Assembly: GCA_021613535.1 (NCBI GenBank)
Contig: CP075497.1
Span: forward strand, 2,294,001-2,358,000
DNA from: Adineta vaga
Taxonomy: Eukaryota > Animalia > Rotifera
Reading direction: 5' to 3'
DNA length: 64,000 bases
This document shows, piece after piece, positions 3,001 to 31,016 of this stretch. The position numbers and the translations under genes were made by a program. Position 1 is the first letter of the stretch, and every line of letters begins with the position of its first letter. The notes under the pieces are model-generated. The model did no database searches, was not told the DNA's origin, and worked only from the letters and a program-made list of their open reading frames with translations.

Positions 3001-6000
3001 TAAATGATTGATTATAAAGAAAAATGATGAGTTTGAAGAACGTTTTGGTCGATTTAACTTCTACACAAAGAAAAAGAAAATCATTTCGATTTATCATTAG
3101 TTACGTTTATTTACTTGATTGTTTTGTAAATCTATCGATTGTTTAAAAGTTTGAATAGCAAACCAGAGACAAATATAAAGAAAAAATAAGAATAAAATCA
3201 CCGATTTATGATGATATAAAAAACGAAGTAAACCCATCGACTTTAAGTTAACATGATGAATAAAAGAAATGATGATCGTACCAATGCATATAATTCTATT
3301 TCTTTCTACTAATCTAATCAAATACAATTACCATGACAGGAAAAAGTCTAGCTATTACGATTGAATTCATTAATATGATAGATTAGATTGCATTGAATAA
3401 TGTATAAGTAAAAATTTCAACTAAAAGAAAAAACGAGTAACATATCATTTATATGCTTTATTAAATCTTATCTCAATGTCTTATCATTGTCGAATAAAAC
3501 GAGTATCTCTTTACGCGTATCAATGTCGAATTTTTGAAAAGAGAATCACCTTTGTTATAATGATAGTTGAGTACATTTATTAACTGAGTTTCCTGTTGAA
3601 ACTAATGAATTAATCTGTATACTTACTGAACTTTTTCTTTTGCTCTTTACATGCTGAATTGAACTGAGTCAGCATGTCGTGTATTTAAGAAGGAAATATG
3701 AGAGAATAGAGTGAACGGAACTAAAGAACAATAATCTGAAAAATGCGTCTTGTCATCGATTCTCAAGAGACTGGATTGAACGTTTCTCCTTTCTGTCTAA
3801 TTTTTTTAGCTTTTTGTATTCTCGAAGTACTTAATGATATAGATTTACACATACATTTTCATTGAATAGACGAAAACGCGATAAAACATAGAATGTCAAT
3901 TATCGAAATTTTATTCGTTTGGTCCAAGGTGAACATGTCAGTAGGCATACTCTTTGATGAAAAATGAATATAAAACAACTCACAAGCTGGTGTTGTAAAT
4001 CAATGAAGGAGAGAAGAAAAGACGAATAAATGTGCGTCCCTCTTCTCATAATCAAAAGAACGAATATAAATATACACATCTACTCACCCTCTAGCAATGT
4101 GATATTGTTGTATAGGTGGAGAATCAGAACGCCGTGACTTGTCACTTGATATAGTATTATTCTGAAGAGAAAAAAGACAAGTTTAGTCTTAGTCTCATTG
4201 ATTTACTTTTGATTTTGTCAATAGACGAAATAAACAAAACGATTTCTACTTAATTGGATCAACTCGCGGTGAACAAATTTTATTAAATAAAGACTATGTC
4301 TCGTTTATATAAACAAATACTTTCTCTCACGTTTCTTCTTCGTTCTTCATATATTTGATTTACCTGTATCAATAAACATACCCAAAGGAGAGAAAGAAAT
4401 AACAAAAAAAAAGAAATTAGTGATAAAACTTGCCATATGAGACAGTTAAGTGTAGTGAACGAATTACTGCTTTAAACGAAATATATGTGAGAGAAGAAGA
4501 AAAAGAAAGAGACAATAGAAATAAATATTGAACTTTATCAAAAGAAAAAAAAGTCTATCAAAACTAATCAATTTTGTTTTTTATTTAGGTATGGGATCTA
4601 ATTGAACATACACTTCTCGCTTGTATTCGACCAAAAGTTCACAAAATACGTGGAGATCTACAAGCTGTTTCTTATAATCATCACACACGTTCTCTTCTCT
4701 TTGCAAGTGAACAAATTACATTTCTTAATCTCAAATTACGGTTACTTGCAATCTCTTCTTTTTCTCCATTCACTCATTTCTTCTTTCATTCTTCATAGAC
4801 CTTATCTTCATGCTGATGTTGTTGTTTCACATTATGAATCCATTCTTGGTCTTCTATTCATCAAAGAATTTAAACAAGTCATTTCATGTACTGAACATGG
4901 TGTTGTTCGCTTATGGGATTTTCTAACAGGAAGAAAAGTTCATGAATTTCAAGCACATCAAGGTCAAGCGATCACATCGATGGCATTAGACACAACTGAA
5001 CGAAGACTTGTCACTGGTAGTCGAGATGGATCATGTGCCATTTGGAATGTTCACAATGGACAACTACTCAAAATATTCAAAAAACCTCATGGTTTCAACA
5101 CTTCTTCCTCTCACATTCTCATACACACCTTCTCTTCTTTCTCCTTTAGATTCACTCGAAATCACTGCTGTGGCATTTGTTGTTGTCAACAATAATTGTT
5201 CAATCTTAGCTGTTGGATGGGATAAGCATGTCAATGTTTTCAATGATGATCGAGAACAAATCAAACAAGTGTGTTATCCAGATGATCGATTTTGTAAAGG
5301 TGATGATGTTCATCATGGTCATCGTGATGATATTCTATGTATCGATAAATCTCAAGGTGATTTGATTGCAACTGGTGATTATGGTGGAACAATTATTGTT
5401 TCGAATCTGTCAAGTAAAAAGATCTTTGCTACTCTCAAATATACAAAACAACAACATCAAGATTCTCACGGAGATGAAGACAAAGATGAAGGTGAAGGTG
5501 AAAAAGAATTCTTTGAGATGAATGAACTTTCCATATGTTGTAGAGAATCCAAATGATCGAGTTGTGAGTCGTGTGATATTTATTGATTCGAGATTTGGTC
5601 GACATGATTCAGCTAATCTGATTAGCAGTGGTCCATATGGTGAAATTCATTTTTGGAATATTTATAAGAATGGAGTTTTGATGGCCAAGTTTCGACCAGT
5701 AAATCTCTTTTCTTTTCTTTTCTTTTCTCATGTAATCGAATGGAATGGAATGGAATGAAATGAATGAATGATTGTTTAGAATCGAGAAAGAAAAACTATA
5801 GTCACTCAAATCAAACTTGATCACACATGTCGATTGTTATTTGCTGCTGATTCGTTAGGTAATTCACTCACTTCTGTCATTACGACCATGTCACTTCTTC
5901 TATGTCTGTGTAGGATTTTTGTTTATCTATGAAGTGGAAAGATATGCACTTCATCATGAATCAAGTCCACCTCATCGTAAGTTTCATGTTGATCAATAAT

Positions 6001-22479: not shown

Positions 22480-22969
22480 TATTGATTTCTTAAATATATT
22501 TTGATCCTGTTTTGTATAAACAGATTGTATGTCTCTTCGTCGAACTATTTCGGTCATTCGTATTAGTATTTTCTCAATTTCCATAGTTGTGCTCTATACT
22601 CTTTAACTTTGATACAAAATATGAAAATTTTCTCTCAGAATTGATATCGGCTAATTCAGCATTACATATATGACGCATGCATTGACATTATAATTGGTAT
22701 CCGCCGAACAAAATATCAGTAAACAAACTCAAGCTATATTTCAAGTCATCATATGAACGATTATTATTTTATTTTGATCATAATTATATACGCACACAGG
22801 AATTAGAAAAGCAATAATAAAAAACAACTTGATTTTTCTTTTGATTCGGAATTAGAAAATTCACTTCACCTACTGCAAAAGTTAGAAAAAGATGATACAC
22901 ATACAATACTAAGTGATAGACAGAGTAAATGAAAATGAGGGAAGTTCATCTAATGATAATGTTCGCATT

Positions 22970-23767
22970 TTATTCAACAATACCCGATCGAGCAATGCTA
23001 ATTTTAGCTTTTGTTGAACCCGATTGTGAACCTAAGCTTTCAATCTTCTTGACAAGATCCATACCATCAACAACTTCACCAAAGACAACCTATTAAAAGA
23101 TAAGAAAGAGACTTTGAAACAAAAGATATCGAGCTTTCTGCAGCTATTTTACATGTTTGCCATCAAGCCATGGTGTAACAACTGTAGTAATAAAGAATTG
23201 AGAACCATTTGTATTTGGACCTGCATTAGCCATAGATAAAAGTCCAGGTTTTGTATGTTTCAGTTGAAAATTTTCATCAGCAAATTTTTCACCATAGATA
23301 CTAAATGAAATAAATCGTCAAGTAAGTTTTTTTTATTGAAATTAAAGATGCGATAACGAATTTACCTTCGACCGCCAGTACCATTACTATGAAAAGATAG
23401 GTAAATGATATTTTTACAATTTGACTCTGCTTGATGAACTTACTGTTTGGTAAAATCTCCACCTTGAAGCATAAATTGTGGAATAACACGATGAAATGAA
23501 CTACCTTGATAACCAAAACCTTTTTCACCTGTGCATAATGCTCGAAAATTAGCTAAAATATGACATTTCATAACACAAAGATAAGAAAATCTTTTTTGAT
23601 AATACCTGCGGTTTTCGGTACAATTTCATCAAAAAGCTAGAAACGAAAAAAAATGGAAGAATTAGTTTTTTGAAAGCCAAAACCCCGTTGCTTATTACTC
23701 TGAATGTGATGCGACCAATTGGATTGTTATCAACTGTAACATCAAAGAAAACTTTCTTGCCAGTCAT
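22970..23767 (-). CDS. Cyclophilin-type peptidyl-prolyl isomerase, cytosolic CypA-like (6 exons)
   Basis: Spliced: [89 protein letters not shown]. Confidence 0.95.
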
Positions 23768-24097
23768 TGTTTGAACGATTTGATAAAACAAGCAATTCAA
23801 TCTAGAATACTAATTGACATTAGCATTGTAGTGAAAATATTAGTTAACCAAAAATAAACAGAAGAAAATACTGACAGAATGTCCATTGCACAATATGTAT
23901 AAACGCATATCTATATATGGAAATAAGGATACATAAAGAGAAAAATAGATACACCCCACAACATCTGACAACAGACTAATTGATAAGAAAGTAGAGAGAG
24001 AAAAGAAAACAGATTGAGATCATTTTTAGAGAATATCAACTCAAAAACAAAAAAAGGCAAAAAAATTCGATGTTTCAAACACTGCAGAGAAGAATTT

Positions 24098-26150
24098 CTA
24101 TTCAACATTTAATTCCTGAAGTAAATTATTCGATGATTGTTGTAAGGAACACGTCGGTAATTGTGATAACTAAAACGAAACAAATATCAATTTGTATAAT
24201 GAAATTCAATCGAACTTACCCGCATTACAATTGATCTACAATTCATATCCTTAATAACCGTTCTGCACGTTGAATCTTTTGATAAACTCGTTAATGTTAT
24301 AATAATCGACTCCATTAACATATCATATCGATGATTTTCTTCGGAAAATTTCATTCGTTCTCGATCTAAATTCATGAGTAATTCAATTAATTTCTGAACT
24401 GCATTTTGTTCACATAAATATGGAATTATTGTTTGAGATAAAGATAAATTTCGAATTAAACTAACTGTTGCTTTGATGATTCCCCAATGTTCTTTGAAAT
24501 GTTTATCCCGAAATAATTTCACAATATTTCCAATTCCATAAGATTTTCGAATAATTTCTCGTGCTTCATTTTCCAACTCATGTCGAGCTGTTACATGTCG
24601 AAGTGTACATAACTAAACGAAATTCATTCGAAAATTTTTACTCAAAACAAATCCATAAGTTTTCAACATACTGCTGCTTCGATCAGATCATTATTTTCAT
24701 CCGAATTCATCATTAATTTCTGCATGACATTTTGTACACCGTGTAATTTAACAAATAAACTTTTATTTATTTGATTATCTGCCGTTAAATTACTGAGAAT
24801 TTCTAAGGAATTAATAACCGATTGACGATCATCACTTGATAACATTCCAGTCAATTGTTGAATTAATGAATCAATATCACGCTAAAATAGGACAACAATT
24901 GATGAAATACAAAAGTCTAATCGATTATATTTACCATTCGTGTTGCTTGATTGGAAATATTTCTCAATGTCGTAAGACAATTATGTCGAATTCGTATACT
25001 TTTCGTTGTACGTAAATGTTTTTCTAAGATACTCAATCCATTGAATTGTAAAATAATACGTTTATTCAATTCATTTCCTGATGAGACAATTGGAAGTAAT
25101 TTTGATATGGTTAATAATAATTTATCATATTTATTCGTATCAAAAATTGAGAGAAGACGTTGAACACATTCTTCATTATTTTGTATGCAATGTTTTGATT
25201 TAGTATTATAACTGGACATTTTTAGTAAACTATCAGTTACTAATGTTAATAATTTGTCATTCGGTCTATCTAACAGATGAATAAACTTGACTATACCATC
25301 GCATCGTTGAATTTCATCAGCTGCTTGATTTTGAAGAACAATTAAAAAATTATGTAATGTTGTTATCACATAATTGACAATATTATCTGCACAGCTGAAA
25401 ACAAAATGTTATGTAAGAAGAAAACGTTTATCGATTTAATTGTCTTACTCAAGAATTTGAAGTAATCGACCAATGCCTCCACAATCATAAATGACACGTA
25501 AACCTTCTTGTTGTTGAGAAAGTGAATGAAATAGATTAGCTAATGCATGTGTTATTTTACCATCACCAATATCTTTCGAAAATGTTTCCAATAAGCTGTT
25601 AATTAACTAAATGAAATAATTGACTTAAGAGAAAAGAGAAATAAAACAAAGATCTTACTTCTCGACTTTGAATGACTTCCGATCGACTTTCATTTCCTTC
25701 TTTTACTAATATATGTGTAAGTGAAACAGCCTCACGAACAATAACTGGATCATCTTCCATCAAGAGATTGAGTAATTCAGGTATAACTTGAGATGGTTCT
25801 GGTTTTCCTGGAACTGTTTGCATTTCTGTATATTGTGGATGTGTATTTTCAATATCATTAGGTAAACGAGAAGGCATTTGTTCATACATAGGTGCACCGG
25901 ATCCATGATGTGTCGGACCTGTACCTGTCGAATCAATGCTACGTAATGAAGCTGGACGAGAATTAAATCCTGAATCACGTTGTGATGTACAACCATTTGA
26001 CGTTGAATATGTATCATCAAGCCACATAGATGTATGACTATCAGAATTGATAGGTTGTAATTGATTTGAAAGGAGTGGATGTTGAGGATGATGTATATGA
26101 GGTTTACTAGGATGAGGAACTTGATGATGCATTGCTGGTGGATAATCCAT
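24098..26150 (-). CDS. Divergent, C-terminally short beta-catenin/armadillo paralog (degron-bearing)
   Basis: DSGFNS degron. ARM repeats with beta-catenin signatures (IPELLNLL, TTLHNFL, LRNISNQAT, LSNLT, LCTLRHVTARH, W.IIKATVSLIRNL). The last exon ends LQELNVE* at 24098. Confidence 0.85.
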
Positions 26151-26758
26151 GATAATTAACTAAGAAATAAAAGTGATATGAATTGTACAGTGTTCATTAT
26201 TCTTACCTAATCGTGTTTAATATGTATATATTCAATGAATGATGATGAACTCGAATGAGAAGGAGAGGAGAAGAGAAGAACGCTAGGCAACCGACACGGC
26301 GGCCGCTCTTTGTCCGTTTTTCAACGGATATTCATTTTTCGTTGTCTTTTATCAACCAATAAAAAACATTGCTTTGGTTACTTGTTACTATCGAATATCC
26401 TCTGTTCTACTTCTTACAAGTACATCTCTTACGTCTTCATACTATGATAGTTTTATTATATCCAGAACAAATAATCTCATATCTATGAACATTTACTCTT
26501 ACGAAGTAAACGAATGATTTGAATTTATGACGCCATCTATCAAAATTGAAATTTTGTACAATCATTGTTGAAGATAAAGAAAAAATTCCAATCGATAAAC
26601 AGTTCATTAAGCCACTTATAAGCTCTTTTTTATTGTTTATAGAAAAAGAAACAGTTTACTGTCTTTCAACTAGAAAAAAAGGACCGAACACGGTCACAGG
26701 GTTAGAAAACAGTACACTAGAATGAAAAGATGAGCTTTTTGGAAAACATTTTGGGTAA

Positions 26759-27885
26759 CTATTGTTTTGGCTTTTCACCATCTAATTCACCACAATCAGC
26801 AATTGTAATCTTCTTTTGAGTTTGACCGGATTGAGAACCTAACGCTTCAATTTTCTTCACTGTATCCATTCCATCGACAACTTCACCAAAGACAACCTTA
26901 ACAGAAAAAAAGAGATCAATGAAATGAACAAAACACAAAGATGTATTCGTACATGTTTGCCATCGAGCCAAGGTGTTGATTCTGTTGTAATAAAGAATTG
27001 AGAACCTAGAAAACCAACGATGAGAATTATCGAAGAGAATTCTGATCATTTTACCATTGGTATTCTTGCCCGAATTTGCCATTGAAAGTAAACCAGCTTT
27101 TTCATGTTTGATTTGAAAACTAGAATCGAATTTTAAAGTAAATATGATGTATATATTCAAATCAATTACTTTTCATCGGCAAATTTTTTTCCATAGATAC
27201 TAAAATAGATAAAATATAGATTTCGAAATATAAAAAGTTTACTCGTAGTGTTTGTTACCTATATCCACCTCTACCGTCACTAAAATACGAAAAGATTTTC
27301 TTTCGTGGGATTTTCAAATTGATTGATTTTACTTACTTTCGTTCGAAATCACCACCTTGTAGCATAAATTTAGGAATTACTCGATGAAAAGTTGAATTTT
27401 TATAACCAAATCCTTTATCTCCAGTACACAAAACTCGGAAATTCTCTAAAGAAACTCCATAGTCTTCATTTCCTTTGAACTTTCTTTCTCTTCATACCTG
27501 CAGTTTTTGGAACCACATCATTATAAAGCTAATATTTTTCAACGGAAAAAAAGTTTTTAAATCTAATCATTAAATTTTAATTCAACTAACTTGAAATGTA
27601 ATACGTCCAAGTGGCTTATTTTCCACATTTACATCACTAAATTTCCAAAAATAAAATAAAATATCATAGAAACAAAAAAGTAAATTACAAGAAACATTTT
27701 GATCGAGGAACATCTTTTTTCGATGATCCGCCACTGAATATTCCAAATGTTCGTTGTAAACCACATGATTTCTGTGTTAATAAAAAGAAAATCTCGTTTT
27801 CTTTTTCAATATAATAAATTCAATCAAATGATAAAACCTGAACATTTGATGTAAGAACAGTTCGAAGAAGTGTACGTGGAATCAT
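26759..27885 (-). CDS. Cyclophilin with predicted mitochondrial presequence (CypD/PPIF-like, multi-exon)
   Basis: Spliced N-terminus [16 protein letters not shown]|[15 protein letters not shown] is Arg/Ser/Thr-rich with no acidic residues. It is followed by [41 protein letters not shown]. Confidence 0.88.
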
Positions 27886-28207
27886 TCTTCTTATCAGTTT
27901 ACTTTTTTCAAAAAGATCTACAAAGACAATGGAAGCACAAAAAAAATTTTTTTATTCATTATCATTCGTCAAAATCATGCGAAAGGAGATTAAATAAAGA
28001 GACATTACACACGCGCACACGAAAAAAAAATTGACATATTCAGATCTCAAAAAAACAAACAAACAAAGAAACAGAAATGATAATAAATGGATTGATTAAA
28101 AGAGATATCTAATCTTCTGACATAAGTAGATCGATATATATGTATGTATAGATATGTATATATGCACACCAATCAAAGAAATTCTACAACTACATTTCAT
28201 TTCATTT

Positions 28208-31016
28208 TCACAAATCTGTATCGAACCAAGCAGCCATTTGAGGATTATTATGAGAAGGTGGAGGTGTTTGATGATGAATTGATGAACGAGGTGAACCTTG
28301 CATCATATCTCGATCGCCAACTAATACTTGATTATCCATTAAATTTCCAAGACCACTTCCACCAACACCTTCGGATGCATAATAATTCATTGTTGGAACA
28401 TCATGAAGTGGCGGTGGTGTTCCTCGATATGGATTCGAATACGAACCACCAGTTGAACCATTAGCCATGCTATAATGCTAAAAATAAACGTTTATTCTTA
28501 ACTAATGAAAACAAAACATTGAAAACTTACATTATTCGTCATATGTTCTTCACGATACAAAGCTGAGGTGACATCTTGTGACAAACGTTTTTTCATATCA
28601 TACGGTTTATCATCCGATAAACGAAATAAAATTGCTGCGGCATATGTAGCTTTAAACGAAAGATATAGTATTATAATTGATTTCGAAAGAGAATTTTGTT
28701 TAACTCACCAACACCTTCATCGTTCGATTTAAGTAATTCAGTTAATTTTGGTGTACAATTCTGTTTCTCAACAATTTCTGCACATAAACGATCATTCACA
28801 AGTTCACATAAAACACCAGTAGCTGCACGTTGAATTGGAACGCTCGATGGTGGATAGAGAAGCTAAACATATAATAATAATTAAACAGAAGAGAGAAAAA
28901 ACAAACGAATTCATACTCGAACAAATAATGGAATACAATCTAAATCACGTATAATCATTCGATTTTGTTGATCTTTTGCAATAATATGTAGAGCACTAAC
29001 ACATGCTTCAAGTATATCATCCATTCGAATATAATTATCAATTAATTCAACATTTGGTTGTTGTCTTTGTAATTCTTGATGACTTCGAACAAGTAATTGT
29101 GCTAATTTTTGTATTGAACCTGTTTCACGTAAAATTGGAAGATTATTTGGTGATAAAGCTAAATTTCGAATTAAACTTATTGTTGATTTAATAATTGGCC
29201 ATGAATATAATGATGGATTAAGTAATTCAATAATTGGTAAAAGACCATTGACATTTCGAACTGTATCTTGTGCTTCACCAGCATGAGAATGTCGAGATGT
29301 AATATGTCTTAATGCACAAATCGCTGGTTCTAAAATTTCTTCTTTATCATGACCTTGTACAATAGCATTGATCAAAGCATGAACACCATTCGATTGAACA
29401 ACAGCCATTTTATTATATTGATTATTACATGTTAAATTGGATATGATACCAACTGCACATGAGACAGTAATTAGATCATTTGTTTGTAATAATTCAATGA
29501 GTAAACGAAGTAATGAATCGAGATTTTCCTAGAAGGAAAATTCAAAAAAGAATTATTGAAATTCAGAAAAATTTGGTTTTCTACGAACTAATTTAACAGC
29601 TTGATCAGAAAGATTTCGAAGAATTTGTAAACAATTTTGTTGAATACGTAAACTTATCGGTTGATATAATTGTTTTTCAAGTATTTGAACCGCATTTTTC
29701 GATATCATCACTATTTTTATCGAAGGACTAACAGATAAAACTCGAAGAAGACGTGTTGTTGTCCATAAAAGTTTTTCATAATCAGTTAATTCTAATATAC
29801 GTAACAATTGTTGTGGACCATTGCTTGATTCAATAATAATCTAAATACAGAGTTGATTTTATTCAAAAATTTGTCTTCACAATAACATTTATTTTAGGGC
29901 GTCAAATGCGTCACCAAAAGAATATAACAAGAAGCTGTTTTTTCATTGTCTATGATGCAAAACTTACCAAAGAAATGAGAAAAATATCTTCTGAATGAAG
30001 GAAATGAAACAATCTCAAAATTAAAGATAGATCCGTTCTTATTTACCTTTACTTCTTCATTATTAAACGCTAACATATGAAGACAATCAGTAAGTATAGC
30101 TAAGAATTTCGGATTGGAACTATTCAATAATCCAACCATTTTTTGACAACCACCACAACGAAGAATTTCTAATTTCGCGTGTTCTAAATGTAATAATAGA
30201 TTGTGTAATGTTGATAGAGAATAATTAACAACTGATTCAATTGATGAACTAAAGAGAAAAAAAGGCATGAAATTTTGAGATAATGAACATGAAATACTTT
30301 ACTCTAAAAGTCGAACAAGAATTGGAATAACACCACCTTTGAAGAGAAGAAGAAGGCCTTGTTTTTGTTGAGATAAACAATGAAAAACTCCGGCAATTCC
30401 ACGACGTGTTTCATCATTAGCGCGTGGATTTGATATTGCTTGAATTAATGCTTGAATCATTTGTGGTGTTGTTAAAGCTAATCGACTTGCTTCTTTCTTA
30501 GCTAATGTATGTAATATTAATGCAGCTTGTCCTGAAACAATTGGATCATCATCATTCAATAAACGAATCAATTCCGGAAGAGCCTTTTCCGTTATATCAG
30601 CATCTTCTTTATAATTTATAATATCAATAACAGCATTTTTTAATAATTGAGATGGTTCAGAAAGTTTCTGAACTGCTGTAGGTTGACCATTGACAAATTG
30701 AGGTGAAGCCGTAGGCATTGATATACCACCAGATACGCCATCTTCGAGTGTTTCAGGAAAGATTGCTGCACGAATACGTTGAGCACGTGTTGAACTTAAT
30801 TGAACATTCATCGATTCGATATGTTCCTGTATCATATAATCATCCATATTACCATTACGAACATGAGAACGATGACCATGTCCATTCATTCCATTTGATA
30901 TTGGATAAGTTTCGTAATCCATAAGGCAAAACTAAGATCAGAGTAAAGTAAAATATCAATCGAGAATGTATGTATGTATGTATTGTACGAGTTTAAACTG
31001 TATGCTGATTCGCCAT
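28208..31016 (-). CDS. CTNNB1: Beta-catenin/armadillo (degron-less, full ARM array and C-terminal tail)
   Basis: [78 protein letters not shown] and C-terminal AAWFDTDL. A probable first exon MANQHT starts at 31016. Confidence 0.93.

Follow-up and report, generated by a model that had tools for sequence, protein, structure and literature searches.

Gene A and its transcripts

The 64-kb stretch of Adineta vaga DNA studied here (the window; contig C6 positions 2294001-2358000) carries gene A, a beta-catenin gene with an early end, together with a second beta-catenin gene, paralog B, and two cyclophilin genes (Table 1). All coordinates are those of the window unless another contig is named. Beta-catenin acts both in adhesion and in Wnt transcription, and its regulated stability and its C-terminal co-activator platform are normally found in one protein. 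Gene A has six coding exons on the minus strand (26150-24098), from a start ATG at 26150 to a TAG stop at 24100-24098, separated by GT..AG introns of 50-59 nt. A preliminary description of this DNA, made from the letters alone, had read an intact frame ending LQELNVE. Our exon model confirms that reading, with a total of 594 codons. The product is residue-for-residue identical to NCBI I4U23_027976 (P0164, "hypothetical protein [Adineta vaga]", 594 aa). Homology searches were run exon by exon, with exon 3 as the representative search; a later word search from a full-length relative retrieved P0164, which we used as the reference record for the whole gene A protein.

To compare the model with expressed sequence, we aligned transcript contigs from four public runs, belonging to four studies, with positions 22600-28500. 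Every splice junction of gene A was reproduced by spliced contigs of all four runs. Contigs of three runs continue from the start of exon 6 at 24169 past the stop to 23825, 23869 or 23881 without a further junction. Cyclophilin gene 2 begins ~300 bp past the stop, and the gene A transcripts end before it. Searches by tblastn downstream of A, or of its counterpart A' on contig C3, with ARM11-to-C-terminal-domain pieces from paralog B', canonical beta-catenin and Didymodactylos returned nothing, and no hidden exons for a C-terminal domain were found there. Thus, the junctions, the read-through of the stop and the empty downstream sequence show that the gene A model and its truncated end are correct, and a longer C-terminus encoded by hidden exons was rejected.

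Two observations on the transcripts stand apart from the gene model. A joint that "goes back 4041" and loose ends at 24481, 24892 and 25350 were considered as rearrangements and rejected: they are paralog contigs placed on short conserved stretches, because the compared stretch ended at 28500. Additionally, across 23825-26369 the contigs from the various studies show mismatches to the window at ~1% of sites, and one run whose label names another organism (organism B) nevertheless agrees at 95% or more. These mismatches suggest variation between strains or cryptic species that share a label or bear neighboring ones.

An Armadillo solenoid that ends in its eleventh repeat

The family of the gene A protein was examined by sequence and by fold. 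In phmmer searches of the PDB with exons 3, 4 and 5, beta-catenin or plakoglobin came first in each case (exon 3, E 1e-19 to 1e-21), and Pfam Arm matched A at E 2.6e-13. An AlphaFold (AF2) model built from a 45-sequence alignment is disordered over residues 1-114 (predicted local distance difference test, pLDDT, <50). Helices begin at residue 119, and residues 119-591 form a solenoid of 11 Armadillo (ARM) repeats with pLDDT >90, whose last helix spans 579-591. Foldseek superposed this model on beta-catenin crystal structures with template-modelling (TM) scores of 0.84-0.86 and a root-mean-square deviation of 2.4-2.8 Å at 34% identity. A is therefore a member of the beta-catenin/Armadillo/plakoglobin family by both sequence and fold.

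The charged buttons that contact TCF and cadherin are in place. In alignments with PDB beta-catenins, K284, the second lysine of NTKSKHCI, corresponds to human K312, and K410, within NQINKSLF, to human K435; both columns are invariant in 45 beta-catenins. The two lysines named in the preliminary description are retained. Further groove residues are intact across the A clade, namely R361 (R386), N362 (N387), N401 (N426), R445 (R469), H446 (H470) and K487 (K508).

The end of the protein aligns with ARM11 helix 3, in agreement with the preliminary description, which had seen neither the final ARM repeat nor helix C nor the C-terminal domain. A thus departs from the full beta-catenin plan of 12 ARM repeats, helix C and an acidic C-terminal domain with a PDZ ligand. 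The stop lies at the same position in the aligned A-type proteins of Adineta steineri and Rotaria socialis, and aligned A-type proteins end at ELNV(E/D). A'-type proteins carry an additional conserved, non-homologous tail of ~33 aa, which is a candidate for a functional difference between the ohnologs A and A'. This tail follows ELNID and reads DRDR.Q.SD.SSHQQ.NNNNN..IDSRH.RQ; the last exon of A' lies at L010 4378-4539, and the tail occurs in Adineta and Rotaria but not in the A type.

A-clade proteins were found in Adineta (3 species), Rotaria (4) and Didymodactylos, that is, in every bdelloid genus sampled, with predicted lengths of 552-648 aa. Every aligned C-terminus of the clade ends in ARM11 or early ARM12; the Didymodactylos protein retains two ARM12 helices. 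The bdelloid proteomes sampled yielded only beta-catenins of the A type and the B type, and none that combines the destruction motif described below with the C-terminal domain.

The preliminary description had named a 3' product with a longer C-terminus, or a ratio of non-synonymous to synonymous substitution rates (dN/dS) near 1, as grounds for giving up its proposal. The transcripts contain no such product. Between A and A', dN/dS is 0.24 at dS 0.77 and similar for every exon. Among the four transcript sets we found 25 coding variants, 19 synonymous and 6 non-synonymous, and the corresponding polymorphism ratio (pN/pS) is 0.085. Gene A is under purifying selection. We also considered whether A could be an artefact, be it through mis-splicing in the model, as a pseudogene, or because further exons supply a longer real C-terminus. 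The sole weak point in its favor is that the 3' untranslated region (UTR) holds neither AATAAA nor ATTAAA, to which we gave no weight. Four transcript assemblies with the same junctions and through the stop, the cyclophilin gene that follows so closely with no coding sequence resembling ARM12 or the C-terminal domain downstream of the stop, the stop position shared between species, and the purifying selection all count against an artefact, which is very improbable and effectively refuted. Gene A is a real, expressed and conserved beta-catenin gene of Adineta vaga.

A conserved N-terminus with a destruction motif

The N-terminus was described at the outset as rich in His, Pro and Gln, and these residues indeed make up 44% of residues 1-45 versus 10% of the ARM part. 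Within the A clade, conservation of the disordered N-terminus is 0.68 versus 0.74 for the ARM part. Of 20 A/A' sequences, at least 80% conserve the island HPLLSNQLQPIN. A further conserved N-terminal island is HPQY.EMQ.

At the place of the canonical motif, the gene A N-terminus carries MWLDD.Y...SQRDSGFNSRPASLRS. Within it, DSGFNS (residues 59-64, 25976-25959) aligns with the canonical DSGIHS, so the destruction motif ascribed to A is present. RDSGFNSR and ASLRS are identical in 12 of the 12 Adineta and Rotaria sequences shown, with one P-to-A change in Rotaria A', and most columns of the SQRDSGFNSRPASLRS region are invariant in the 20 A/A' sequences. The DSGxxS core is present in all 14 A-clade proteins checked, Didymodactylos included. 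Where the GSK3/CK1 relay calls for Ser or Thr (+4, +8 and +12), A has serines at +4 and +8 and an isoleucine at +12. Finally, the alpha-catenin-binding helix (LKxAVxxLINYxDDAEL), which is present in B, is precisely deleted in the whole A clade.

Paralogs and origin of gene A

We searched the 100.8-Mb, 6-contig A. vaga genome for beta-catenin loci and found five: A, B, A', B' and C. A' and B' (P0014) are the ohnologs of A and B and lie on contig C3. B is 31-41% identical to A and retains the TCF/cadherin contact residues. Both B and B' carry the alpha-catenin helix, the 12 ARM repeats and helix C, and their tail ends in W(F/L)D(T/S)DL; of the DSG motif only a decayed remnant is left. The preliminary description had called B the stable paralog, and no D[ST]G..[ST] was found in or upstream of B, nor of B' or C. 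None of the five loci (0/5) therefore holds motif and tail in one gene.

Gene C (L011 ~3549-5324; C2:13337548-13339323, + strand) is a highly divergent, short, beta-catenin-like gene. It has only an ARM core behind a very short N-terminal part (MNCSIETK...); the DSG motif is absent, neither ARM12 nor a C-terminal domain can be recognised, and identity to A-clade exons is 32-42%. No ohnolog of it was found in the genome.

The four-gene order B-cyclophilin-A-cyclophilin is identical on C6 and C3, where the cyclophilins lie at L010 466-1416 and 4882-5759. A and B additionally have three intron positions in common, as well as the F253N substitution and the loss of W383. Because of this gene order, these shared substitutions and these shared introns, the probable origin of gene A is a local tandem duplication, older than the bdelloid genome duplication, in which a beta-catenin and a cyclophilin gene were copied as one block.

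Phylogenetic trees gave the A clade full support, but its very long stem kept them from placing it. All beta-catenins, A and B among them, join at a single node in the full tree; without B, A sits on an unresolved base, and without A, B falls among other long branches. The tree was not used as evidence for a sister relationship of A and B. The sole flatworm sequence compared, P0043 of the beta-cat1 class, does not join the A clade in a tree that is itself unresolved. A word search from P0043 returned only flatworm proteins of the beta-cat1 class, of which the short P0342 and P0344 are fragmentary models. Other short representatives proved unrelated. Gene A is probably not orthologous to planarian beta-cat3/4: the block arrangement and the residues that A and B have in common point to a local tandem duplicate in rotifers. 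A flatworm origin of the DNA, considered for its 30% GC and 50-nt introns, was rejected, as the relatives retrieved belong to Adineta vaga and other bdelloids.

Comparison with known beta-catenins

The planarian precedent itself is real. Schmidtea mediterranea beta-catenin-3/4 bind TCF and beta-TrCP but do not activate TOPflash (Su et al. 2017, PMC5643146). They also fail in Xenopus axis assays and inhibit beta-cat1 dose-dependently, and beta-cat4 is required for photoreceptors (PMC5643146). A matches the architecture of this class, with the phospho-motif and the TCF residues retained and the terminal ARM, helix C and C-terminal domain absent. Since this architecture has already been described, the kind of protein is known. 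Like the planarian proteins, A retains the N-terminal GSK3/beta-TrCP motif, K312 and K435 and goes back to a gene duplication.

The differences are several. A comes from Rotifera (Bdelloidea), and synteny suggests an independent tandem origin beside an adhesion-type paralog. A loses only ARM12, whereas planarian beta-cat3/4 have lost the last two repeats, and the alpha-catenin helix kept by beta-cat4 is deleted in A. Unlike the planarian proteins, A has no acceptor lysines near its motif. Above all, no full signalling paralog like beta-cat1 coexists with A. Su et al. (2017) sampled no rotifer and found a single beta-catenin in all non-flatworm lophotrochozoans sampled (PMC5643146), and our literature searches found nothing on rotifer beta-catenins.

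A division into one adhesion paralog (alpha-catenin site, PDZ-ligand tail, no motif) and one destruction-complex/TCF paralog recalls planarian beta-cat1/beta-cat2 and C. elegans BAR-1/HMP-2. In beta-cat1 and BAR-1, however, the C-terminal activating region is on the signalling paralog (PMC5643146), whereas in bdelloids the C-terminal domain is found only on the adhesion-type copy. A also has a shortened C-terminus like the neural Armadillo isoform of Drosophila, vertebrate plakoglobin and sponge BcatB; Amphimedon BcatB (P0208) is among the sequence matches. The C-termini of these three are shortened or weak, and they are proposed dampers of beta-catenin/TCF output (PMC5643146). Unlike A, they derive from alternative splicing or unrelated duplications, and each stands beside a fully active beta-catenin.

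A proposed split beta-catenin system in bdelloids

Features that one beta-catenin normally combines are divided between the two bdelloid genes. In B, the alpha-catenin site, the complete set of 12 ARM repeats, helix C and a DTDL tail remain and DSGxxS is lost; in A, DSGxxS and the TCF-contact residues remain, and the alpha-catenin helix and all that would follow ARM11 are gone. Partners for such a system are encoded in the genome, namely at least seven Wnt loci and six DIX loci, together with four TCF/LEF loci that have an HMG box (closest to LEF-1) and a C-clamp. Because no A. vaga locus and no sampled bdelloid beta-catenin joins the motif to the C-terminal domain, we lean, tentatively, to the reading that A and A' are the Wnt-responsive TCF partners, or transducers, of a bdelloid-specific split system and not accessory dampers. 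With Wnt off, A would be phosphorylated at DSGFNS and handled by beta-TrCP. With Wnt on, it would accumulate and occupy TCF through the groove of ARM3-9. Having no C-terminal co-activator platform, A would then act by occupancy and could displace Groucho or other TCF partners; ARM1, or the N-terminal islands with their unusual conservation, could also carry its output. A is the shortest form of its clade and, of the two ohnologs, may be the weaker partner.

The four TCF/LEF loci (L012-L015; C6:11052309, C6:10997294, C3:5844951 and C3:5817251) lie two per chromosome, 28-55 kb apart and on opposite strands. The L012/L015-type TCFs contain a DE(V/I)KVFSAS stretch reminiscent of DELISFKDE, the beta-catenin-binding motif of TCFs, a likeness that searches of Pfam and the PDB did not confirm. 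The N-terminal open reading frames of the TCFs had no match in Pfam or the PDB, which is uninformative as to absence.

Several points weigh against A and A' as transducers. The trees, as described above, do not place the A clade. Four substitutions in A, F253N, W338L, K345P and W383T/I, fall at the Axin/APC hot-spot positions of beta-catenin. The equivalent of T41 is deleted, so that one relay step is gone, and in Didymodactylos the +8 serine spacing of the motif is broken. In most of the full-length beta-catenins checked, one lysine precedes the DSG serine by 11-18 residues and a second follows it by 16 (K19- and K49-like), and 11 of 12 other beta-catenins checked have an upstream lysine 11-23 residues from the motif. 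Throughout the A clade, no upstream lysine is nearer than 35 residues (most often the distance is 44-45, or there is none) and no downstream one nearer than 56; no K19-like acceptor ~10-18 residues upstream was found there. The Pfam domain of the TCF N-terminus and BCL9 HD2 had no match in the genome, but control genomes were equally silent, and the result does not speak for absence. The planarian proteins of the same architecture fail in TOPflash and inhibit beta-cat1, so that A, without a tail, may be simply inert.

Another possibility is that DSGFNS is no longer a working degron. A would then be stable and Wnt-independent, and could be either a constitutive scaffold in the TCF, cadherin or APC groove or a phospho-dependent beta-TrCP binder that is not ubiquitinated. 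The motif lies in a lysine desert (no lysine within 44 residues upstream or 56 downstream in the A type, the upstream one being 44-45 residues away, and none upstream at all in the A' type and Dcar1), and both the missing T41 equivalent and the replaced Axin/APC residues fit a dead degron. On the other hand, RDSGFNSR...ASLRS and the serines beside it do not vary among Adineta and Rotaria, and Didymodactylos retains DSGxxS, which argues for a phospho-dependent function, and ubiquitin could be attached to lysines of the ARM domain or to the N-terminal amine. We consider a dead degron improbable. Since the motif is almost unchanged, we infer destruction-complex (Wnt) control of A; the absence of the canonical ubiquitin-acceptor lysines is why we put it no more strongly. 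The claim in the preliminary description that A is Wnt-stabilised therefore keeps its motif but, with the acceptor lysines and the T41 equivalent missing, is less secure than had been assumed.

The same description had offered A as an inhibitor of the planarian kind, that is, a Wnt-stabilised dominant-negative that binds TCF, recruits no C-terminal co-activator and competes with the tail-bearing, stable B (or with A'), so that Wnt would lower TCF output in the way that planarian beta-catenin-4 acts on beta-catenin-1. The architecture of A matches that of the Smed-beta-cat3/4 inhibitors, B retains the TCF/cadherin contacts together with helix C and the C-terminal domain, and A, the shortest of its clade, stands beside an A' with a conserved ~33-aa tail. 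However, planarians have a full signalling beta-cat1 as the target, and none was found among the bdelloids sampled. With B lacking the destruction motif, either the pathway would be inverted or B would have to be regulated otherwise, and an inhibitor has no obvious need for extra conserved N-terminal islands. A dominant-negative A is thus somewhat doubtful; the architecture it rests on stood, and its simple version, with a full signalling beta-catenin to inhibit, is weakened.

Returning to the split system, motif and tail may be permanently on separate genes. Activation would then have been re-routed through the N-terminal islands or ARM1 partners, reduced to displacement of co-repressors, or inverted to a Wnt-driven repression of B/TCF, a wider proposal that is possible but to which we give limited credence. 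In planarians, a tail-less copy can damp signalling in a tissue-specific way while a full signalling copy is also present. Bdelloids appear to be further along: their motif-bearing copies are all tail-less and their tail-bearing copies are all without the motif. If the split holds, bdelloids would be a natural experiment on whether Wnt output can do without the C-terminal domain and on what an N-terminal or ARM-only beta-catenin is capable of. Additionally, names can now be given to proteins that stand as "hypothetical" or "unnamed" in the annotation of seven rotifer genomes.

Coordinates and neighboring genes

The features of gene A and the genes around it are collected in Table 1.

Table 1. 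Positions of gene A, its N-terminal features and neighboring genes in the window
Feature	Position	Strand	Remarks
5'UTR exon of gene A	26207..26369	-	transcript contig X16 record 9: 26369-26207, then from 26159
Gene A exon 1	25659..26159 (coding sequence, CDS, 26150-25659)	-	residues 1-164: disordered N-terminus and ARM1
N-terminal 45 residues, His/Pro/Gln-rich	26016..26150	-	44% H+P+Q; includes conserved island HPLLSNQLQPIN
SQRDSGFNSRPASLRS, residues 56-71	25938..25985	-	beta-TrCP-type DSGxxS, Ser at +4/+8; aligns with canonical DSGIHSG...APSLS
Gene A exon 2	25449..25606	-	ARM2; exon model and transcripts
Gene A exon 3	24935..25394	-	ARM3-6; K284 (= K312) at 25195-25193
Gene A exon 4	24672..24881	-	ARM7-8; N401 (= N426); K410 (= K435) at 24764-24762
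Gene A exon 5	24220..24612	-	ARM8-11; R445/H446 (= R469/H470); K487 (= K508)
Gene A exon 6	23825..24169 (CDS 24169-24098)	-	last 23 codons (ARM11 helix 3), TAG, 3'UTR of ~220-270 nt
Paralog B	28208..30922	-	12-ARM beta-catenin; alpha-catenin helix, helix C, tail AWFDTDL, no DSGxxS
Cyclophilin gene 1, between B and A	26750..27840	-	open reading frames, spliced contigs, paralogy to cyclophilin gene 2
Cyclophilin gene 2, directly downstream of A, bounding its 3' end	22800..23780	-	open reading frames, spliced contigs, paralogy

In Adineta steineri, the NCBI model P0215 (853 aa, PF00160 and Arm) fuses B with its cyclophilin, which is probably an annotation merge.

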